A DNA stretch of 64,000 bases from Paragordius varius (lineage: Eukaryota; Animalia; Nematomorpha), in the NCBI GenBank assembly GCA_964247055.1, contig OZ176054.1:2728001-2792000 (forward strand), written 5' to 3'. Below are positions 4,549-62,210 of the stretch, in pieces. Every line of letters starts with the position of its first letter. Positions within the stretch are counted from its first letter, which is position 1. The notes under the pieces are model-generated. The model searched no databases, was not told the DNA's origin, and was given only the letters and a program-made list of their open reading frames with translations. The translations under genes and the position numbers were made by a program.

Positions 4549-7500
4549 TCATTGATTGGAATTTGGTGTAATCTTCTCATAATCTTGAATCTTTTTTCTC
4601 CACACCCATATTTCAAAATGGCCCATTAAACATGTCGGACAAAGTGCATTAGCCACATCAATTGATTTTGAATGCCGACCAATCCTAGATAGATCAAAAG
4701 AGAGAACAAAAATGCTCAAAACATAATCAAATGTAAAGTCGACAAAGCGATCTTTTCTTAAAGTTAACAAACGAAAATAATTTATTATCAGATATTACAT
4801 AATATATTAATTTAATAAAGCTATTTCAATAATATTGCATAAAAATATATGATTTTAATTTCAAATATCTTCGATGTGCTAAATTGTATATATTACCCAA
4901 ACAGGATGCTGGATCCTACTTTTTATTATAAGCTTAATGTAAACAAATTTTAATAGGTTTAATTTATATATAGTTATCGCTAGTTGCGAGAACATTTTTT
5001 TGAGAAATGACTTTTTTAACTCTTTCATAAATTCCGATTTTTTAAATCTTTTTTTCGGTTACCATGTGTTTCAGAAGAGAGGTTTGACTATTTAAAGATG
5101 ATATAGTATCATTAGTACCAATAAAAAATCGTTTCAAACATAATATAATTAAAACATACTTATAAGAACAGGCATGACATTTGTACAAAAATTTAGTTTT
5201 GATATCATATGTGTGACATCTTTTGATGGGAGGGAGGCAAGGAAACGTTTCAAGAGCCCGTTTTGCAAAATATTGCCAGAGTGGTCCATGGTGTCGTTCC
5301 ATTTTACTGCATATTATATACAATATTTATTTCGTTTCAAAAACAACACTTTTACGCTAGACCCGCTTTAATTTCGTTCATAAAGCAAAAATTGTTTTAA
5401 GGAGCACAGTTTTAAAAAAGATTGCCATTAAATAAAGTTACTTCAATCAATTTTTTAGAGAATTGTACTAGTAACATGATAATTTTTAAGCCGTTAATGG
5501 TATATTTTATGGTTGAAAAAAAATTTATTACTTTAAACATCCTATGATAAAATGTTTTTCTACTAATACCCATTAATTTGTCCCCAAATATATTTTTTAT
5601 AAAAGGCTTACATAATTGTGATGTCTTAGACGTAAATCATACCTGGAAGTGTAATAGCCCTGGTTATCAAACATTTTACGTAATCGACCACGTGAAGGGG
5701 TCAGTGTGGCCCACGAATGATTCAATGAGTTTTGTATGGTTTTGCTTGCTTTTTCAACCTTTTTTGTGGTATATGAAGTAATTTTGATTTTTTCATTAGT
5801 CTTTTCTTTTTCGTTATCACTACTTTGACTCTCTGAAAAACTACAATCTTCATTATTGTTGGTAAGACAAATCTTCGGAGCAGTCGGAGTTTTAAAAATC
5901 AATTTTTCATATTTTACGTTGTCATTTATATTGTTAACTGACTGCGTTAATTGAAGACCGTTAACATTATCAAAAGTTGATTTATTCCGCACATTCTTAG
6001 ATTTAGTAATGTAAAATACGGCAGCATGGCACATTTCATGTATAAGGACGTCCCTAACGCGTTCTTCGAAACAAATGTAAACGTTATTATTTGAACCATA
6101 AAAAATGGTAAAAATTCTGAGCAAATGGTTAATACTTATTGTTGGGCATTTTTAGATAAAAAATTGTTAATTATGGATATTATTACTAAAAAAATAATAT
6201 AAAAGGATAACCTCAATAAATATATTCTTGGTAAATCAATGTAAGAAAAGAATTTTTTTAATTTGCAACTATATCAAATATCATTGTTTAGTAAGGAAAA
6301 GATTAAGTATAATTAAAATTATCCCATTAAATGTTATTCTTAAAATCAAAATGTATAGAGAAAAATCTTCCAGATTATAATATATATATATATATATATA
6401 CCTGGGGAATCACAAATTTTATCCGACAACTCAATCCATACATCTAATGTTTGATAGAGAACTTCATTATTATTCTCATTTCTAACGGTGCGTTTGCGCG
6501 AAAAACATTTCCCAGCCGTTTTCGTTAGTCGCCCATTCCATTCTATCACAAAATCTTGAGGAAACTGTTTAAATTTAAAAAAGCAATAACGCCATAATAT
6601 CATAACTTGTATAAAATAAATCTGTTTAATTGCGAATAACATCTTTAATAGATGCGATTCTAGATAATTAATATTTTTCGCCAAAAAAAGTTGAATTAAA
6701 ATTTCTATAAAAAGAGGTTAAACCTTTCCTTGGAAAATACAGTCATTATAAATTTCAAATAGTTTGTGAGTTAACTCCAGACGATACCGTTTAAATTGCT
6801 TCACATATCTAATGGCTAAGTTAATTAAATCTTCCATTATAGGTTCGTTTGATTTTCCGAATCTTAAACCAGACTCTACGTCTTTGTCGGATAAACTTTT
6901 CAAAAATTGTTCATAGCTACTTTGTAAACTCAAACTTTGACCATATTTGGTGGTGTTTTTATGTGGCGTTAAACCAACCTTACTGCTTTTAGGTGTAATC
7001 AATGTATGTGCATTTTTATTGGTCGCATAAGAGTCTGTATTATAAATTTTAGAACCAGATATGTTTGGGTTCAATGCATCATTTAAAATGTTTTTTCTAA
7101 TGTCCAAAGTTTTTAGACTTATTGGTCTTGTGTCTCCTTTTGTCTCTTTATTTAATTGCAAAAATTTACTTTGATAATTGGAGTTGACAAAATGTCAGGG
7201 ATTAATTCTGTATCTGTTTTAAATTTTAATATTTCGGGATACGATAATGTGCATATATCAGATTCTTCATCTGATGATGTATTAACAATAAAACTATCAT
7301 CTTTCCTTGATTTCAATATTGTGGTTTGCTTGGATTTTGTTGGATCATCAATTTTTAATTTTTCAAAAAAGTTTTCTAATTTTTCGTCATCATCAGACGA
7401 AGAACTAAAAAAAGTATGCACTTGTACCGATTTTTCAGTATCAAATAATTCTAAGGATCATCAAAGCGAAAATAAACTTTTACATATTTGATTATTATCC

Positions 7501-7619
7501 AAGAGTGAATCATCAACCAAAATATCGTCAGTGGACTTATTATCATTTAGATCATCGGATAAAAAAGAATTTTCAATCAACGTTATCCCACTTGTTTTAT
7601 ATTTGATGACACTGTTCAT
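4549..7619 (-). CDS. GCNA: GCNA/ACRC-type SprT-family metalloprotease with an acidic disordered N-terminus; exons approx. 7619-7478, 7450-7170, about 7143-6724, 6564-6402, 6063-5643, 5306-5160, 4684-4549
   Basis: Motifs LFEIYNDCIFQGK|FPQDFVIEWNGRLTKTAGKC, IELSDKICDSP|ERVRDVLIHEMCH (HExxH), HGPLWQYFA, RCHTYDIKTKFLYKCHAC, IGRHSKSID..CPTC. Phases of the four 3' introns are consistent. The start codon and the junction near 7144-7169 are uncertain. Confidence 0.8.
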
Positions 7620-7733
7620 ATAGCTTAACTACTGATTAATTGTAATAATTTTGGCAAAATTATAATTTTCAAAAATTTAAATTTACCGGTTTTCCTCATA
7701 TGAGTTAACCATGTGTTCAAACAGACAATATTA

Positions 7734-8184
7734 ATGTTGAAGCGTAGCGTTTTGGTGGATGTTATAAAACAAATTAACACCGGTGGAATTATTTCCACTT
7801 TGTTTATTTAAATATATTAAATTAAGACTGTTAGATGAAGAAGGTTCAGTTTTGGCACATTCTGGGAAAATTGAAAAAAATGTCCCAATGATATCCGCAA
7901 TCCTTAGCAGTATTTGGAAGATATATTTAAGTAAAGCAAATCAAAAAACTGATATTCTCCCAATCGATTGTATAGTTAGTTGATAAATATATTTAGAATG
8001 GTGTTAAAATATTTGTAAAATCAATCAACAAATTCCTTTTATGCGTTGTTACTGCACCCATTGATGAAAACAATCAGCCCATAAATAAAGGCATGGTGTT
8101 CCATAAAGTTATATTTAATTAAATATCTAGATATCACTTTTGAGCGACTACCTAGCTCCTCAATTAGCCAAATTAGCTCTATGA
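7734..8184 (+). CDS. LAMTOR2: Ragulator subunit LAMTOR2 (roadblock fold), 126 aa; exons 7734-7801, 7827-7974, 7997-8107, 8131-8184
   Basis: Spliced product MLKRSVLVDVIKQINTGGIISTL|LLDEEGSVLAHSG...AILSSIWKIY...IDCI|NGVKIFVKSINKFLLCVV...GMVFHK|ISLLSDYLAPQLAKLAL* matches the recalled LAMTOR2 pattern (NTGG, LL..EGSLLAYSG, IW..Y, GM, YL..PL). It requires GT-AG introns of 25, 22 and 23 nt. Confidence 0.9.
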
Positions 8185-8599
8185 ATGCATTTAATTTAAT
8201 ATATTTCCTTCAAACTATTTACCATGAAAATATTAATTTAGTTAATCCTTAAAACTAAAGTGCTTTTATATCAATCTTAATGCATTCCGTATATGATACC
8301 AATTAATCTCGCTGATATGAAGATTATGTCATATTAGATGTAAAAAGAGTTGCTTTAACTAAATAAATAGGTCTACCTTTTTCCCTATATCGATTTCAGA
8401 GCATTCGAAACACCTGAAAAATTGCCATTGAAATTGAATAGACCTAATGTTAGTGGGATTGTATTTAGATAAAAATCAGACCATACGTTCGTATCGTTTG
8501 TATTTATATTTGGGCTCTATCGTTAATATGTAACAGGGCGCCGAGAAAAGGATATTATATTTCTGCGCTTCTAGTGACTATCGACGAAAAACCAAATTA

Positions 8600-10003
8600 T
8601 TATAACACACAAATGACAAAAACAATTCGAATTTATGTTCTATTTTTGAAATATAGAACAAAAAATTATAATAACTAAACACAATCCCAATAATATCTTC
8701 CTCCCAAAAAAGATTAGCGCACAGCCGAGATGTGTTTTGGGATACGCTCGACCATTGAAGACAATGTGGGGCCATGTTTGGTGGCCAACTACGCCTTTTC
8801 GCCAACCTCTATTCTTTTCATTTTCAAGCCATGCAGTTGCTTTGGATGATAAAAGTAGCAAGCCACCTCTGTAGGATTTCCAGCTGTTTTTTTAACCCGA
8901 TATTTGTTTATTGTCCGATCGTCATATTCACTAATTCATTAGATTGAGGGTTGAAGGCGTATGTAAAAATATGCTTAATATTTAGTTTTAAACAATATTT
9001 TTAAATTTTGACGAAGGAAGTTGGGATCCGTTATCAGATACTCTAAAGAAATGGGTCCAAACCGAACAAAATAATGTTTAAACCATTTATAACAGTTGAA
9101 GATGTAACCTTTTAAGAAATACAACTTCACACCATTGTGAAAACCCATTAACTAAGACTAGAAAGTCTTATCTTCCGTCCATTGGACCTGTTATATCGAT
9201 ATAAATACGCTCCCAGGGAGAATTGATTTCTTGCCAATTACCGCAAACTTTCTTACTGTCACTATTCATACGGCAAGCTACAAAGTATTTGATTTCTCTA
9301 TAATGTCAGAATTTATTGAATTTAACAAGACTAAATTTCTGGTTAGAGATTTCATACTTTCGATTCCCGGGTACCTCTTATGGAAATTACTTTAAACATT
9401 TTTCTGTAATCTTTTAGGGATTATTATTTTCCCATCACGTGGCATTATCCGTTTTCAATTTCAAACTTATTGGGATCTAAATCAAAATATTGAGGAAAAT
9501 GGCCGCTCTTATAAGCATAGAATTTGAGGAATTGCAAAAAGTCTGTTCTCGTCAGTGGCGTAGCTAGAGGGGGGGAAGGGAGGCTGATGCAGGCGGCATA
9601 ATTGAATGGGCGCCGGATTTTGAAATTTTTTAATTTTATTTAAGAAAATAGGCATTTAAAAGTTATTATTTTAAATAATACATAAAAAATACCCCTTTTA
9701 TCAGTGATATCGACCACGGGTTGAATTCGATTATTCCAAGGGGTTGCATAGAGGGGAGGGGGCGCCATCACGGATTCATGCGCGGGCGCCAGAAATGCAA
9801 GCTACGCCTCTGGTTCTCGTGTTCATCTCGAATCTCGACAAATTCAGATTATTAACCCTCGAATCGATATTTCGACTATTCAGCATCAGGCTTTTGATTA
9901 CCAATATTAACTTCTTCACAAATCGGTATCCTAGATAAGGAATCTATGATAAATTTTGGGTACCCGATCGATATTATATTTTAAAATCACAATCAAACAG
10001 GGC
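8600..10003 (-). mobile_element. Degenerate Ty3/Gypsy LTR retrotransposon copy A, 3' part (RT-integrase connection, integrase, PPT, eroded 3' LTR)
   Basis: Minus-strand translation with stops and frameshifts: DFKI*YR..DSLSRIP, IIIPKRLQ..H..PGI, PWERIYIDITGP, VSDNGSQ, PQSN. Purine tract GGGAGGAAGA near 8700. Colinear with copy B. Confidence 0.75.
9553..9812. mobile_element. hAT-family MITE (260 bp) inserted in Gypsy copy A
   Basis: TIR CAGTGGCGTAGCT / AGCTACGCCTCTG (12 of 13 match). Perfect 8-bp TSD GTTCTCGT at 9545-9552 and 9813-9820. Confidence 0.85.
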
Positions 10004-10070: not shown

Positions 10071-13000
10071 GGTGGTCCGAGATGACCGAACTCTTGTAAA
10101 AGAGATTCTCTAGCTTTGTGCAGCGAAAACGCACTCTCACCTCTGAGTTTGAGGTTCAGCTATAAGGGCATATAGTTTGTAAAAAAAACCTGCTAAATTA
10201 TTTAAAACCATGGAAATATTGAACAATTATAAGAATGAATGATATCACTATGAAACGACCTAAAAACATCACAGATATATTAAAATCTATGTTAATGAAA
10301 ATTTTTAATAACAATATTATTATTTCTACTAATAAAAATTATAATAATATATATACAAATTAAAAATGGGACCATCCAACAAACAACACCAAAGTTAAAC
10401 CAAAATATAGAAACTATAATAAGATAAATATAAATAATTCCATCCCTAAGCGTCTCAAAATTGGCACTTGGAATGTTGGTACTATGAACGAAAAACTATG
10501 GATGGTTTTAGACACAATCGCAAAATTTGGCGTAGATATATGCTGCCTCCAAGAAACAAGATATAAAACATCAGGTCTAAAAAATTTAAAAGGCTTTACA
10601 TTATTTTTTACCGAGGTAAAACAATCTCAAGCTGGAGTTGCAATAATAATATAAAATGAGCACAGAGATAACATTCTTCAAATTACTAGACACAGCGACA
10701 GAATTATACAAATCAGATTGTTAATACAAAATTCAATATACAATATAATCTCATTGTACGCGCCTCAACGTGGCCTTCCCGACGTATTAAAGAGGCTTTC
10801 TGGATCCAATTGCAAAACATCTCATTCAAAATTCCTACATCCGACAAAATCATTATAGCTGGCGATTTCAACGCCCATATTGGCAGCAACGAAGGATTCA
10901 AAGGATTGCATGGTGGTTATAGCTTTGGCTTAAGAGATAAAGAAGGAGAAACTCTGCTCGAATTTTGCTCATCTATACAACTCCATATTGCTAATACCCT
11001 TTTCACCAAAAAGGACAGCAAACTGATTACCTATACATCCGGCTCACAAAAATCAACAATCGATTATATATTAACAGGTGAAAACCTGAGGCATCTGATT
11101 CAAAATACAACTACATATAATGCGGATACACAACACAAATTACTTGTAAGTACATTAAAATTAAAAAAATTCAAACCTACACCACAACCATTCCAACCCA
11201 AAATAAATACCTCCAAAATAAAACACATAAAAATAAATAATAATTTTGTTAGTAGTACAACAAACGAAATAAAAATGGATTTTTAATCAGTAGAGGAAGG
11301 ATGGAAAAACTACAAACAAACGATAATGAATAATGCTGAAAAATGGTGTGGAAGGATGGTGGTGGGATGACAGTGTGAACCCTTACTCCTGAGAAAAAAC
11401 GAGCTGCATAAAAAATGGAAGAAATCAAAAAATAATAAAGATTAAATCATATATAATCAATATAAAAAACTGGTATACAAAGCTATTATGGATTTAAAAA
11501 ATAAACGTAGTATGGAAATGGCGGACGAGCTGGAAAAGGACATAAATAATATGACTTTAGAAAAATCAAAACCAAAAGGATATTAAAAATATGTGTTGCG
11601 TTAAAGATGAAAAACATAATATTCTTATCAATCCAAACGACATAATAAACAGATGGGAAAAATTTATGAAAACTAAATTTAACCCCCCTGAATCTAAGTT
11701 TACTACACATGAAAATCCTGTCATACAAGGTCCCATTCAGGAATTCACTCCAGAAGAAATAGCAATAGTAATGAAAAACATTAAATCTAACAAAGCCACT
11801 GGGCCCTCTGAGATCTCTGCAGATTTAATGAAGGCCACACCGATAACTGTTAAATTTTTGGCAGAGCTGTTTAATTTGGTATACAAAAACAACACAATAC
11901 CAACCGATTGGGACAAAAGCTACATTTACCCCGTTTATAAAAATAAAGGAGATACCGTTGATTGCTCCAATTATCGCCCACTAAAACTTTTGGAACACGG
12001 TATGAAAGTCTTTGAAACAGTGATCAAAAATAGAATTAAAAATATAACAATAAATAAAAATCAATTTGCTTTTCAAGAAGGTAAAAGCACATCGGAACCC
12101 ATTTTTATTTTAAATCGCCTACAAGAAAAATACCTAGCAAAAGGTCAAAAGCTGTTCCACATCTTTATAGATCTGGAAAGAGCGTTTGACACTATACCCA
12201 GACACCTCATAATTGAGGCATTAAGGTATCAAAAAATCGAAGAATATTTAATAAAATTAATAATGCTCCTGTATGAACATGCAAGCTGCGTTAAAACACC
12301 AGTCGGAAACACAAATTATTTTAATATTAATATAGGCCTCCATCAGGGCTCAACTCTAAGCCCATTACTGTTTATAATAATAATGGATTTATAAGCAGAG
12401 ACTTTGCAGCTGTTCCACCATGGAACATGCTGTACGCCGACGATTTGGTTATAACAGCAAAAACAGCACATGAACTGAAAATTTTATACCTCAAATGGAA
12501 TACCTGTTTAAAAAACATGGGCTAAAAATAAACATAGAAAAGACGAAGGTAATGATCACAGGAGATGAAAAAGAACCGTAAAATACCCTTGCTCCATTTG
12601 TTACAAAGATGTTAAAACAAATTCTATTCTATGTACATCGTGTAAAATGTGGGTCCATAAAAAATGCTCCAACTTGAAAGGAAAATTAATTGACAATAAA
12701 AATTTTGAATGCCAAAGCTGTATATCAGGGAAACCAAACATCCCTAAGTCAAGGGAGTTTAGTATCGAAGATTGTAGGTTTGAAATCGTCAACGATTTTA
12801 CCTATTTAGGTAATATCAGTAATAATAATGGGGACCCTCAAACAACCATATCACATAGAATCACTCGGCTGGGCAAAATTTAACCAACTCAAATATGTAT
12901 TGACACATAAAGACATAACCGAAAAAAATAAAATCAAAATGTATAAAGTGGGTGTCCGCCCTACCCTTACCTACTCCTGCGAAACCTGGGCAATCACAAA

Positions 13001-13332
13001 AACATTAGAATCGAGATTAAAAAGAACGGAAGACAAAATGCTAAAATATATGATGATAAATTCTACCATTGAACTAGAACCAATAACAGCTTTTATCAGA
13101 ACAAATAGACTTCGTTATTTTGGACACATAGACAGATCCAGTATAGACTCACATGCAAAGGAAATTCTTGATTTACAGATTTCTGCCCCCAACCGTAAAG
13201 GTAGGCCTAAAATAACTTGGACTCAAATCATAGAAAATTCCTGAACATACCTCGAAACGCAACAAATGATAGAGACATATATCGTAAATTAATCCATGGA
13301 TCCCAATAACTGGGCCAAACCAATAATACAAT
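10004..13332 (+). mobile_element. Full-length but frameshifted RTE-clade LINE (APE endonuclease, RT, PHD-like finger), 3329 bp
   Basis: APE motifs IGTWNV, ICCLQET, YAPQ, AGDFNAHIG, IDYIL. RT motifs KATGP, NYRPLK, FIDLERAFD, GLHQGSTLSP, LYADD. RYFGHI..KGRPKITW at the C-terminus and a CAATA-type tail. 13-bp TSD AATCAAACAGGGC at 9991-10003 and 13333-13345. Confidence 0.92.
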
Positions 13333-16817: not shown

Positions 16818-18914
16818 TTATTCCATAAATGATGGTTCCTCCACCAAAACATGTCTTTTGGCCAGGTTTTTATTGTTACAATTATTATTAGATGATGGCT
16901 GAGTTTTTCCTTGTAAATTTATAGTTGTGGTCTCAGTTGTTAATACAGATTGGTCATTAGAGCCTAATAAGATACTTTGCTTATCGTATAAATTTTGGTT
17001 TTTACAGTTCCCTTCGGGTTTTATATTATTGTTTGCATTATTCTGATTATACTGACGTCTTTTAAGTGATGTTAGCGCTTTTTTACAAGGCATGATACAA
17101 ACGGAGACTCCTTTAAACATTTCCTGGAAAGCAAGTCGAAAGTTTTCACTTAAGAAGGCATACAAAATGGGATTGACACATGAATTGGCATATGCAAAGC
17201 AATATATGGCTAGAGAAAGGTACATTACAGGTCTTGGTAGGGGAGAATCAACATTGCGATTTTGTCGAGCACGAAGTACAAGTTGCAAAATCCAATACGG
17301 TGTCCAACACAATATGTAAATGGCTATAATAGTTAAAACCATGTGAGTTACACGCTTTATATTTTTTCTCTTTCTTTCGGCAAATGTTGTGTTGATGGGC
17401 GGTTGCGGTTGGGAAGGCGTGGATAGAGGTTGTTCTTTTGAAGGCATTTTGACTATCTTGCATGCGTTCAGGAGTTTTGAAGAAGGCACAGTGTTGATTT
17501 TTTCAGCAGTTTTTGGAGGAGTTGGGGGACTTGGAGTTTGTAGATTTATTTGTATCATTGATGTATTATTGTTGTTGTTGGGTTCGAATTTAGACAACAT
17601 ATTTTTCCCAATATATGATGGATTTCGTTTAGTGGTTATAGATTTGTCTTTTTTTATAACATTATCGCCACCGTCGTTATTTTCTATATCGTAATCATTG
17701 TCGTAATCATCAACGCTGATGTTTACAATATTATGAATACTTTGTTTAGCAGCGAATTCCTGTGGAATGGTTAACTTTTTGCCAGTCATAAGATCCCCAT
17801 GATTGGTATTATTGTCTGAATCTATAAGGGATACGTTTTCCTGCCTTTTTATAGGTGATTTAAGTGGATTGCCTTTTGCGGGTGATAGCGAATTAGATGA
17901 GTCTAAATTTTCTTTAGTGACAAAAATGGAACTTAAGCGATCACCAATTCTATGTTGTGCTTTGACAATGGACGGTAACAGACTTTGTAAAACACCTGTA
18001 TGGCTGCTCATTTCGTCAGGCCCATCGGTGTAAGACAATTCAATGGTACTAGGGATCGGTGTTTTGAGACTTTTTTGATCCTTGTGTTTTATTTTACGCC
18101 ATTCTTTGGGACCTGTGGATCTTAGTTTCATAATGACTAGGGAATAAAAAATGACAGTTAAAAGTACTGGAATGCCATATGCAAAAACAAATGTATACAG
18201 TGTGAATATGGTAGCTAAATCGAGTCTTTTGCGTTTACCCCGTCGGAGCCAAAATCCTGATCTAACCTTATCTTCCTCCTCTGGCCATATAAGGTGACAT
18301 GTTTGAATGGTGCGATTTGAGTTTAGTGTTATCTCGACCATGTTTGCATGTTTCATGATAGGTATCATAATAAGGGCCGAAAAACACCAAATAGCCAAAC
18401 ATATTAGTTTAGCGGTTACCGGTCTGCGTCTATAGCTTCGGGCTAAGCTATTTGTCGCAAGGCACACGGCTACGAATCTATCTGCCGACAAAATCATGTA
18501 GAAAACGCTACTAACGAATTGATTAACATTGGCTGACACGTAGTAGGCTTTACACATAAACGGACCGAACAACCATTGACCTGAAACCATGGTTGTAATG
18601 ATTAAAGGTATCCCTATCAAAAAAAGTACATCAGCCGTAGCCAGATTTAAAATGTACATGTTTGTCACTGTACGCATTTTGGGGTACCGAAGGATGGCAT
18701 AAATGACACAACAATTACCGAAAAGCCCTATGAGACATACAATTATGTACACTGTCATAACAAGTACGGTTGATCGATTAAGCGAATTCCTGCTGGGTGT
18801 GGGAGCAGGCGTACTTGATTGGAGATTATCAGTTGTATCACTTACACTATTTAATACTGTTGAAACATTAACCAAAAGGGTAACAAGTTTTGAGTTTGGG
18901 GAAAGGGTTGACAT
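16818..18914 (-). CDS. Class A neuropeptide GPCR of the allatostatin-C/somatostatin receptor family, single coding exon, 698 aa
   Basis: Seven hydrophobic segments with GN..V, KMRTVTNMYILNLATAD, WLFG.FMCK, NQFVSS..LSADRF, CWTPYW and NSCVNPILYAFLSENFR. Confidence 0.88.
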   Translation of the reverse strand: MSTLSPNSKLVTLLVNVSTVLNSVSDTTDNLQSSTPAPTPSRNSLNRSTVLVMTVYIIVCLIGLFGNCCVIYAILRYPKMRTVTNMYILNLATADVLFLIGIPLIITTMVSGQWLFGPFMCKAYYVSANVNQFVSSVFYMILSADRFVAVCLATNSLARSYRRRPVTAKLICLAIWCFSALIMIPIMKHANMVEITLNSNRTIQTCHLIWPEEEDKVRSGFWLRRGKRKRLDLATIFTLYTFVFAYGIPVLLTVIFYSLVIMKLRSTGPKEWRKIKHKDQKSLKTPIPSTIELSYTDGPDEMSSHTGVLQSLLPSIVKAQHRIGDRLSSIFVTKENLDSSNSLSPAKGNPLKSPIKRQENVSLIDSDNNTNHGDLMTGKKLTIPQEFAAKQSIHNIVNISVDDYDNDYDIENNDGGDNVIKKDKSITTKRNPSYIGKNMLSKFEPNNNNNTSMIQINLQTPSPPTPPKTAEKINTVPSSKLLNACKIVKMPSKEQPLSTPSQPQPPINTTFAERKRKNIKRVTHMVLTIIAIYILCWTPYWILQLVLRARQNRNVDSPLPRPVMYLSLAIYCFAYANSCVNPILYAFLSENFRLAFQEMFKGVSVCIMPCKKALTSLKRRQYNQNNANNNIKPEGNCKNQNLYDKQSILLGSNDQSVLTTETTTINLQGKTQPSSNNNCNNKNLAKRHVLVEEPSFME

Positions 18915-56852: not shown

Positions 56853-57078
56853 GCTATAGGTAACAAGGCAACGGTTAAAAGAAATATAAAATAGTAAACA
56901 TAAACAAATATTTTTATTTATAAAGATGCAAGAACATATAAAAATTCTTGGCGTATAAAATTTCTATACTGATTATAACGGATAAAGGCGACTTCAAGCA
57001 AGTTGACCATCAAGGTAATCAAAATTAGCCGCGCTCTCTTTTGAGAATAAATTCAATTTATTTTACCTCTTATAACAT

Positions 57079-57197
57079 GTTACGACCATATCACGTTGAA
57101 AGCACCGGTTCCCTTCCGAACACCGAAGTTAAGCAACGTTGAGCCTGGTTAGTACTTGGATGGGTGACCGCCTGGGAATCCCAGGTGTCGTAACTTT
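57079..57197 (+). rRNA. 5S rRNA gene (single dispersed copy, possibly a pseudogene)
   Basis: GTTACGACCATATCACGTTGAAAGCACCGG...GAAGTTAAGC...GGTTAGTACTTGGATGGGTGACCGCCTGGGAA...GTGTCGTAAC; the ends pair (GTTACGAC/GTCGTAAC); internal A- and C-box-like elements are present. Confidence 0.92.
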
Positions 57198-58884: not shown

Positions 58885-61668
58885 TTAATCCAAATTATCC
58901 ACAACTTTGGTGTAAGTTGACATGAATTGCGTAACAAACGCTTCAAGATGGAATATAGCCTTACTTCCTTTCTGGAGTCTGTGTTCATAGAAAGCGGCCC
59001 ATTTAATCGTTTCAACATATGCCTTCTCATCACAATTATTAATAAGGTGTTTTGTTAGCTCCTATATTATCAATTAAAAATCAGTTTTAATCATAAAAAA
59101 TATTTTTAAATATAATATATTGGTTTAAAGTAAATATTGATAAATATAAAAACTCCCGAGTATCATGCACAAGGTCTGAAAATAAAAAAATAAATATCCA
59201 TTTTAACTTATTATACAACAGAATTAGTGTTTATAATGTAATTATAATTAGGTAATATTATAGTTTATAAAACCGGCAATTTTAAGCTAATTCATATCAA
59301 AATTTCGATTTTGCTCAAAACAAAATCAATAATTAAAAAGTATATAATAAATCTATGCATCAAAATTTAAGAAAACGAATGCATATCCCAAATAAAATAC
59401 CTTAAAAATAATTTCGGGTGGTATACAATGGACCAATAATTCATACAAACGATCCCGAACTTCAAGTAATCTGTTTATAATGTATTTATTAAAAGCCAAA
59501 ATCTCATACTTATTTCAATCATTAAAAAACATAAAATCAAGCTGATAATCTTTATCAAAAAAAATTATAAGCCGCAAATAATATAAATTAGATACTTTTT
59601 GGGGCTCTGTTCTTTGAGTATGGCGTTTGCAGTTTCCTCTAAATAAATTTCCCAATCCAAAGGAATGATTTGTGGATTCTCAGCATTAAAAGGATATCTA
59701 AAAGTTACAATCAAAAAATAAATAATTCTGGCAAGTTATATAAAACAATGGCTCAAAAATTACCAGAGACTAGTTAGTTTATGTTAATATAATCCAAGCA
59801 ATTTTTTAGCTGTTTTATTTCAAAAGGATTTCATTATAAAATCAAAAAAACTAATTACAAGGGTATGATCATTTAAGGGCGAAAAAGGATATAAATTTTT
59901 CGACAAAATTAATCATTACCAATTATATGAAAATTAATCAGTCTTATTCACAAAACATAAATATATACCACTTACTAATGTCAAAAAACTTACAATTGAA
60001 CTTTACATGCTTGGAGCGTTAACAAAGCCCTACGTAAATTGCCACGTGATTTTTCAATTATGGCATGAGCAAAAGATTGCGGTAATTCAAATCGTTCTTG
60101 CTGAGCAATTTTCATCAAAACTTTTTCCATCTAAATCAAATTTATGGAATATAATAATTTTTAAAAATATATCCATCCGTTATAAAATAATTATTCAAAC
60201 AATATATAAAACGTTAATATATGAAACCTTTTCTTGTTAATTATATCCAGCTTTAACAATATGAAAAATTGAATTTCGAACCTCAAACTACAATTTATTT
60301 AGTCAAAAATTTATCATTACGACGATAGTTATTCTGAAAACATATCTAAAATTAAATATGTTAAGACGACTTATTCTTTATACTAACCTCTTTGACAAGA
60401 AATTTATCCTTTTGATATAATTCTGCCAATTTATAATGTATATTCCATATTAAATGTGCATTGAACTACATTCTAAAACGCATCTATTTCAAAAAACTAT
60501 TATTATGCTAATACTACATAGTTGGTAATGTTTACTGAGCGAAAAAACTTAATCCACGATTTATGAACTTCCATAAAATTTTACGTTTTTTGCCAAAATA
60601 TATGATTTTATAGTTATATATAAACTAAAATACAATTATCGATGTTTTGACATCTTTTTAAACAAAAATTCTCCCATTTAGTCTCTAAAATTGCATTTTC
60701 ATTTTTTGCTTAGAAATTTGTAAATTTAAACATTTTTAACCTCAAAATCGGTAGGAGAAGGACACCTAATACAAAGGCATCTGCTCCTGATAGCCGGTGT
60801 TATTTTGCTGAGTGTGGAAGTACTTAGGATCATGCGACAAGAAGCCATATATTTCTCCATAGTTCTCCTTAGAGCATATTGGGCATCTTTACTACAACGG
60901 TTCACCTCCGACAATATTATGACTAATTTTAGGTTAAAATTTTTTAATTTTAGGTTAAAAACAAATTGTAGTTAATTACAGTAGAAATTTTACAGAGGCA
61001 AAAGGTTAAGACTAAAAGACATTTTTTTATTTTCTCACATAAACAATATAATTTTATTAATGTATTACAAAATACATCGCTGTTTTTTATTTCGTGACCC
61101 AAAACGATGTTATATTTTATAAAAATCTTTAAGTTTTTTCGTTTGGGTATCAATTATTACTGTATAAAATAAACTTTTAAAAGTTTTTTGTGATGTTGAA
61201 TCCAATTGTTGGGTTTGAGCCGTGGATTTTATTAATTCTTGTATAACTATGCGGTCATAAATACCAACATCACTAAAAAATAATAACATGGTACTAATAT
61301 TTCTGTCAATATAATTATTTAACAAAAAGTAATATGTCCATATTAAACCTTGGCGTGCATTCAATGTGATAGTTGCTGGATAAAATATCAATATCCAATT
61401 TTTTATTAGATGGTGTGGTAAAATTAAATTCTTCCATTTTTAATTTTTCCACACCATGCCCATAAATCTCACGCAGTAGGCAATATATTCTTGTTTTTTT
61501 ACCGCCACGTGATGGGCCATAAAAGAGCAAATGAGGAAAATCTCCTGAACCAATCTAAAATTAAAAATAATAAACACTTACCAAAGTTTTTAACTTTAAG
61601 GATTGGTTATGATGAAAGTCTAATTCACTAAATTCTTTGGGGCGGTATTTATCGAGCCACAATGCCAT
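58885..61668 (-). CDS. RFC3: Replication factor C subunit 3 (yeast Rfc5 type); exons 61668-61582, 61554-61349, 61272-61175, 60922-60741, 60130-59994, 59697-59596, 59470-59401, 59061-58885
   Basis: MALWLDKYRP, GDFPHLLFYGPS.GGKKTRI, SNYHIEC.PSDVG.YDRIVIQE, KDAQYALRRTMEKY, IRSRC, GNLRRALL, DWEIYL, RLYELLVHCIPPE, EHRLQKGSK.IFHLEAF. All intron phases are consistent. Confidence 0.95.
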
Positions 61669-61717: not shown

Positions 61718-62210
61718 ATGTTATGCGGTCCAATTCAATTTGTGTCACCCATTTCACAAGATATTGATGATATATTGTTTGTTTTCAACAATTATTTTTT
61801 TAGGAATGGTATAGGTTTGCATATATTTTTATAGGAAAAAATTTGTATGATAAAAATGGAGTCATATTAGAAAATATAAAGATACTAAATTTTACATATT
61901 ACAAAGGCAATCTTTTAGTTTTGACTCAAGGCGCTCATCTCTATATAATCAATGGTTTAGCTCAAAGAGTTATTGATTGCGATTCACAAATTATGGCCGT
62001 TAAATCGAATGAAATAGAAATATATCTCATTTCAGATAAGTAAAACTAATATATTTTTAGTAATATCAAAATTTTTAAATCAGTAGAGGATATTAAATCT
62101 AATAATTTTTGTGAAATAATACCGTGTAATGTTAAACAATCTACTTGTGGCAAAGATTATATATTAATTATGAATGAAAAGAACAACATGGAAGCCAGGG
62201 GAACTTCCAA
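61718..62210 (+). CDS. 5' part of a gene with an RCC1-like repeat signature; later exons not located
   Basis: An open frame 61804-62039 joins through a 21-nt GT-AG intron (62040-62060) to NIKIFKSVEDIK...VKQSTCGKDYILIMNEKNNMEARG, resembling RCC1 repeats (V..I.CG..H.L.L....V..WG). The start and the first short intron are ambiguous. Confidence 0.45.

Follow-up and report, generated by a model that had tools for sequence, protein, structure and literature searches.

The DNA at positions 7734-8184 of the window (the whole 64,000-nucleotide stretch of Paragordius varius DNA that was analysed) raises the question of whether a LAMTOR2 gene is divided here by three spliceosomal introns of only 25, 22 and 23 nt. 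On the forward strand of this locus, stop codons interrupt every frame of the unspliced DNA; removal of 7802-7826, 7975-7996 and 8108-8130 joins the coding parts 7734-7801, 7827-7974, 7997-8107 and 8131-8184 into a 381-nt ORF of 126 codons plus TGA, drawn from a genomic span of 451 nt. The arrangement had been proposed in a preliminary description of the locus, and the coordinates given there, the three lengths, the GT..AG ends, the indivisibility of each length by three and the restoration of the frame all proved exact on recount. Each of the segments also holds several internal stop triplets. The parts of the gene are as follows.

7734..7801, forward strand: LAMTOR2 exon 1; 68 nt, comprising the ATG, 22 codons in all and the first two bases of codon 23; GC 0.353
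7802..7826, forward strand: putative intron 1; 25 nt, phase 2, GTT donor, AAG acceptor, GC 0.08
7827..7974, forward strand: LAMTOR2 exon 2; 148 nt, the last base of codon 23 and 49 codons
7975..7996, forward strand: putative intron 2; 22 nt, phase 0, GTT donor, TAG acceptor, GC 0.18
7997..8107, forward strand: LAMTOR2 exon 3; 111 nt, or 37 codons
8108..8130, forward strand: putative intron 3, the least supported of the three; 23 nt, phase 0, GTT donor, TAG acceptor, GC 0.13
8131..8184, forward strand: coding part of LAMTOR2 exon 4; 17 codons and TGA; GC 0.389, the highest of the gene

The reading favoured here is that the 25-, 22- and 23-nt segments are very probably genuine spliceosomal introns, to which we assign a probability of about 0.82, with more confidence at junctions 1 and 2 and less at junction 3. 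The case rests on the colinear alignment to LAMTOR2 across the first two junctions, on the 126 intact codons, on the contrast in GC content, and on the uniform size and shared GTT donor of the segments. Rescue of the ORF was given no weight, because such rescue succeeds in random sequence and errs in the RFC3 gene of the same window.

The identity of the gene was established from its pieces. Within the PDB, exon 1 alone (22 aa) had no match other than LAMTOR2 chains, over their residues 1-22, and exon 2 alone (49 aa) likewise matched only LAMTOR2, at residues 24-63 (E 0.006). Residue 23, missing between these two matches, is supplied by the codon that intron 1 splits. With exons 1 and 2 joined, residues 1-63 aligned to residues 1-63 of LAMTOR2 without a gap (E 7.7e-11), all 12 hits being LAMTOR2, and the five residues over junction 1 are identical to those of the mammalian protein. 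The assignment to LAMTOR2 in the preliminary description is thereby borne out, exon 1, exon 2 and the joined N-terminus all matching nothing else in the PDB. The spliced product, a single domain, would be 126 aa long compared to 125-131 aa for the solved LAMTOR2 chains. As judged from these alignments, the gene is LAMTOR2 for the N-terminal three quarters of its predicted product, and the C-terminal third is too diverged for detection by sequence alone. Exon 3 by itself gave no match in PDB, Pfam or Atlas, and neither the exon pieces nor the C-terminal 72 aa matched Pfam, the Robl_LC7 profile included. The junctions were tested with short joined peptides, three of 72 aa and one of 79 aa; the C-terminal pieces spanning junctions, of 72 and 79 aa, matched nothing in the PDB. 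A search of exon 2 against 1.84 billion cluster representatives of predicted proteins returned only two repetitive junk proteins and none containing exon 2, and two word-index searches, one with an open frame of 71 aa and one with the 72 aa of the joined N-terminus, returned no relatives.

Junction 2 was examined in the same manner. The peptide made of exon 2 and the first 23 residues of exon 3 aligned in register to LAMTOR2 residue 94, addition of the start of exon 3 lifting the score from the 20.1 bits of exon 2 alone to 25.4 bits; the first 18 residues of exon 3 align to LAMTOR2 residues 78-94. Junction 1 thus falls inside mammalian codon 23 (phase 2) and junction 2 after M77 of the mammalian 'DCM' (phase 0), and these alignments demonstrate exact colinearity of the predicted protein with LAMTOR2 across both. 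Overall, the product resembles mammalian LAMTOR2 (also p14, MAPBPIP or ROBLD3; chains 1VET_B, 5X6U_B and 6EHP_B) in its length of 126 versus 125 aa and in its colinearity to residue 94, but differs in a deletion of about five residues around mammalian 64-70 and, by our reading, in an insertion of about five residues before the last helix. No paper on the structure of the LAMTOR2 gene was found in the literature searched.

The preliminary description had held that a complete 126-aa protein is obtained only by these three removals. That holds at junction 2, where intron 2 is the sole frame-restoring GT..AG deletion. For the other two the wording is slightly too strong: junction 3 has further options of 35 and 47 nt, and at junction 1 four longer GT..AG solutions also restore the ORF. 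These four would delete conserved residues, leaving intron 1 as the sole GT..AG solution at junction 1 that keeps them.

How readily chance could produce such an ORF was estimated with 12 simulated 64-kb sequences of the window's dinucleotide make-up. When as many as three GT..AG pieces of 20-30 nt were allowed to be removed, loci of at least 126 codons arose 0-5 times per 64 kb, with a mean of 1.75. At each LAMTOR2 junction, hundreds of deletions restore the frame, between one and five of which are GT..AG; the GT..AG share of ORF-restoring deletions per junction is about 0.2-0.7%, close to the value of about 0.2% given by a rough composition-based estimate. A maximum-ORF search with free GT..AG removals picked spurious introns even in RFC3. 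Rescue of the ORF alone is consequently not beyond chance, and it is homology that makes the case.

The first alternative to be weighed accepts introns 1 and 2 and denies the third, with the segment either kept, giving a 113-aa protein that ends at the TAA at 8120-8122, four codons beyond the unspliced junction, or else replaced by a 35-nt intron at 8096-8130. Junction 3 lacks homology in PDB and Pfam, and its support depends on a provisional human reference sequence because the C-terminal pieces match nothing in either database. Alternative GT..AG solutions are at hand, with both the 35- and the 47-nt removal restoring the ORF, and the 17-codon open stretch gained by splicing would arise by chance with a probability of 0.28. 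Against this, removal of intron 3 yields a 17-codon extension that ends in TGA and brings the total to 126 aa, close to the mammalian 125. When a provisional version of the last 31 residues of human LAMTOR2 was taken as reference, the 23-nt version gave the best match, an ungapped one of 27 residues scoring 31 (shuffle p 0.0035), compared to 22 for the 35-nt version and 13 for the unspliced one. The provisional human LAMTOR2 sequence agrees with that of the mouse over residues 1-94 except at one residue, taken as a species difference; on its approximate numbering, junction 3 would fall after what we take to be the K ending the human 'GMLKAK'. The preliminary description took the three positions for those of the vertebrate LAMTOR2 introns, which might make the segments shrunken ancestral introns. 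The GC content of exon 4 (0.389) stands against 0.25 in the 216 nt behind it, and intron 3 has a GTT donor, a TAG acceptor and a size like those of the other two segments. On this evidence, junction 3 is probably real, and a gene with the first two introns alone, or with the 35-nt form of the third, is unlikely.

A second alternative is that the locus is a decaying LAMTOR2 pseudogene that has received three short insertions with coincidental GT..AG ends. Chance GT..AG rescues are common in AT-rich DNA, such as that of this window (22-34% GC per 2 kb), and the RNA-labelled runs of the species contain no LAMTOR2 words. However, outside the three segments the gene runs through 126 codons free of stops and frameshifts, which is unlikely in a dead gene because the local stop density is 0.072 per codon, giving a probability of 7.7e-5 for such an open stretch. 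Moreover, the junctions identified above are exactly colinear with mammalian LAMTOR2, and the segments are all of 22-25 nt with the same donor triplet and a GC content (0.129) far below that of the exons (0.336), with the flanks at 0.24-0.25. A further argument comes from RFC3, located 54 kb away in the window, where a like segment was confirmed. Its first intron (61555-61581, reverse strand) is 27 nt long, opens with the donor GTAAGT and includes an in-frame TAA. Residues 1-28 of human RFC3 are matched by exon 1 of this gene, and the match of exon 2 begins at residue 30, its third residue being residue 32, with no gap; this exact colinearity across the intron is what confirms it. Introns shorter than 30 nt thus occur in more than one gene of the window, in LAMTOR2 and in RFC3, and a pseudogene at the LAMTOR2 locus is quite improbable. 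The later introns of RFC3 are, by our reading, roughly 55 and 200 nt long. In the forward-strand gene adjoining RFC3, a candidate 21-nt GT..AG intron was noted at 62040-62060 that keeps the ORF open, which proves little given the chance control.

The favoured reading, that of three genuine introns, implies a simple sequence of events. An intact and functional LAMTOR2, a Ragulator subunit of the roadblock type in an AT-rich animal genome, would be expressed from a pre-mRNA carrying three U2-type GT..AG introns, all three of which would be removed to make the 126-aa protein; were any one retained, translation would stop within a few codons. Of these steps, removal in RNA and junction 3 are the ones that we infer. 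The +3 position of each donor (GTTTAT, GTTAGT and GTTATA) is T, where a U1-complementary donor would have a purine, and none of the three introns is long enough to accommodate a polypyrimidine tract. T at this position is unusual for U2-type introns. These departures lower the claim that the signals are canonical, not the claim that the introns are spliceosomal. Pairing with U1 would be weak with T at +3, and short A runs located 5-9 nt before the AG of the LAMTOR2 introns provide candidate positions for a branch point. Given introns so rich in AT, the weak U1 pairing and the absence of room for a tract, recognition is likely to proceed by intron definition over a very short and roughly fixed length, as in other systems with tiny introns. 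The view in the preliminary description that the spliceosome of this animal may handle introns too short for the canonical U1 plus U2/U2AF footprint is a reasonable one.

Removal by some means other than the spliceosome, whether by cleavage of the IRE1 or tRNA-endonuclease type or by somatic excision of DNA in the manner of ciliate IESs, would be suggested by size, as the XBP1 intron, at 23-26 nt, is of nearly the same length. With their GT..AG ends, however, the segments have the form expected of spliceosomal introns. Around each of the three segments, the predicted fold does not surpass that of shuffled sequences (z 0.62 to -1.14), and no stable RNA structure was found around any of the three, neither a hairpin nor a bulge-helix-bulge; that the flanks fold no better than shuffles speaks against excision by IRE1 or an endonuclease. 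Elimination from the DNA is opposed both by the ends, which lack a TA..TA boundary repeat, and by the DNA contigs described below, which keep the segments and include no segment-free form. Excision of any of these kinds is thus very improbable, and on present evidence no other reading would come near that of spliceosomal removal. Intron 1 was also seen to include 16 bases (7810-7825) with perfect complementarity to 8191-8206, in the 3' UTR just behind the stop; by a rough estimate, chance alone would provide such a complementarity about once per five AT-rich 2-kb stretches of this kind.

The contigs in question were those assembled by Logan from four public runs (X1, X2, X3 and X5) and placed on positions 5000-8600. 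Runs X1 and X2 (sample S1) and X3 (sample S2) behave as DNA, because each has an even depth over genes and intergenic sequence alike and resolves two haplotypes. Run X3 derives from another individual, as its many substitutions make plain. One of its contigs (record 22) spans 7354-8168 with all three segments present; its five gapped letters are accounted for by two gaps, of 3 nt at 7654 and of 2 nt at 7731, which precede the ATG and thus fall outside the gene. Contigs of X1 (record 7) and X2 (record 15) cover 7868/7878-8180, introns 2 and 3 included, with zero differences, and no joint or indel inside LAMTOR2 was listed among the contigs of X1-X3. The one listed polymorphism in exon 4, 8181 A>T, is by our reading synonymous in the proposed frame. 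The preliminary description had argued that the segments are not sequencing errors, and we concur, because the contigs of a second individual carry all three without indels and the DNA provides no uninterrupted ORF. That they are indel errors of assembly or sequencing in a truly uninterrupted ORF is hardly credible when independently assembled contigs from two samples carry them with no joint in the gene. Run X5 has patchy coverage at low depth that does not reach LAMTOR2, and its loose ends are haplotype variants, not splice joints.

Transcripts were sought among the same public data. The RNA-labelled runs of the species contained zero LAMTOR2 words. A further run, X11 (sample S2; a 24-Mb contig set of 24 M letters), contained 0.41 of the sampled LAMTOR2 words. 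From our count that 62% of the LAMTOR2 31-mers lie wholly within exons, the share expected in sample S2 is about 0.45 for fully spliced mRNA and about 0.73 for unspliced RNA, the DNA run holding 0.73. Run X11 is probably an RNA library of sample S2, and its word share fits splicing; patchy coverage would look alike, and the figure is to be taken as a lead only.

Upstream of LAMTOR2 lies a gene with which it would share its promoter region.

about 4600-7619, reverse strand: SprT-like (GCNA-type) gene, head to head with LAMTOR2, the two ATGs being 114 nt apart

The N-terminal part of this gene is acidic, the ORF at 5597-6124 contains an HEMCH motif, and a tail resembling a zinc ribbon lies at 4549-4770. 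Its intron of about 159 nt (about 6566-6724 by our reading, donor GTTTAA) carries polymorphic indels at 6682, 6702 and 6718, and candidate tiny introns were noted in its N-terminal part. Within the shared promoter region, contigs of X1 and X2 depart from the window sequence behind 7675, where the depth of X1 dips as well, and at 8103 contigs of X2 and X3 start behind two different foreign sequences. The loose ends at 7675 and 8103 found no match within the window, and their source is probably not splicing but a structural variant together with AT-rich repeats.

Animals with introns of such size have been recognized before. According to Hadjez et al. [quoted passage not shown] The list of groups with ultra-short introns given in the preliminary description therefore needs extending, as it omits the myxobolid Myxozoa now published (PMC13644364). 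The LAMTOR2 introns share with those of D. japonicum and the myxobolids the form of animal GT..AG introns of about 20-27 nt between conserved exons, with reduced splice-site motifs, a few As shortly before the AG and no real polypyrimidine tract, and the animals that bear them are all parasites. In contrast, the median intron of those animals is tiny and has the donor 'GTa', whereas the LAMTOR2 donors are GTT in three of three, and the window studied here is not compact, holding as it does a LINE of the RTE type.

10810-13244, forward strand: LINE ORFs with endonuclease and reverse-transcriptase domains, RTE type

Tiny and ordinary introns coexist in this DNA, as seen from the intron of about 159 nt in the neighbouring gene and the longer, later introns of RFC3.

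A second comparison is with the ciliate Paramecium tetraurelia. All Paramecium introns are tiny, with GTA as donor, and nonsense-mediated decay is held, in one model for this organism, to police them. Its introns are reported to have a mean length of 25 nt (10.1101/2021.08.05.455221; PMC5014332). The LAMTOR2 introns belong to the same size class and, as in Paramecium, retention of any one of them gives an early stop, but P. tetraurelia is a ciliate and not an animal; nor is the parallel in retained-intron stops evidence, because stops are to be expected anyway in DNA this rich in AT.

Within the Nematomorpha, no description of short introns was found in the literature searched, and the hairworm genome papers found there make no mention of introns. 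The Gordionus genome paper, in which introns are never mentioned, gives 71.6% complete BUSCOs and a GC content of 26.9%, with which the GC content of the window agrees. In the literature as of September 2026, a hairworm would be the third animal lineage with introns shorter than 30 nt and the first ecdysozoan. The earlier two lineages have compacted genomes; here, tiny introns would stand beside ordinary ones in a repeat-rich genome, with LAMTOR2 a gene of 451 nt whose introns are all tiny, and the hairworm would thus lend itself naturally to the study of how a single spliceosome deals with introns of either size. The LAMTOR2 introns are likely to be a further instance of a class of hairworm micro-introns that is as yet unpublished. 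The shortest intron that common gene finders allow is well above 25 nt, and genes like LAMTOR2 would for this reason be broken or missed.

A more speculative proposal, which we advance only tentatively and regard as doubtful, is that hairworm micro-introns form a separate class of about 21-27 nt with GTT donors and no polypyrimidine tract, located mostly near the 5' ends of genes and recognised in a manner unlike that of the ordinary GTA-donor introns in the same genome, for example by length with little help from U1. If such a class does exist, the 'loss of universal genes' and the low BUSCO values in Nematomorpha might in part be an artefact of annotation, because gene finders do not model micro-introns.

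Two further features of the window were identified.

57078-57196, forward strand: full-length 5S rRNA gene (Rfam RF00001, 118 bits)
16818-18914, reverse strand: intronless gene for a rhodopsin-family GPCR of the somatostatin-receptor type, 698 aa

LAMTOR2 was absent within the 10-kb flanks of the Gordionus orthologue or paralogue of this GPCR. The best hit of the receptor is a protein of Gordionus sp. m RMFG-2023 (45% identity); only about a third of its length aligns to relatives, a limited extent that points to long inserted loops.
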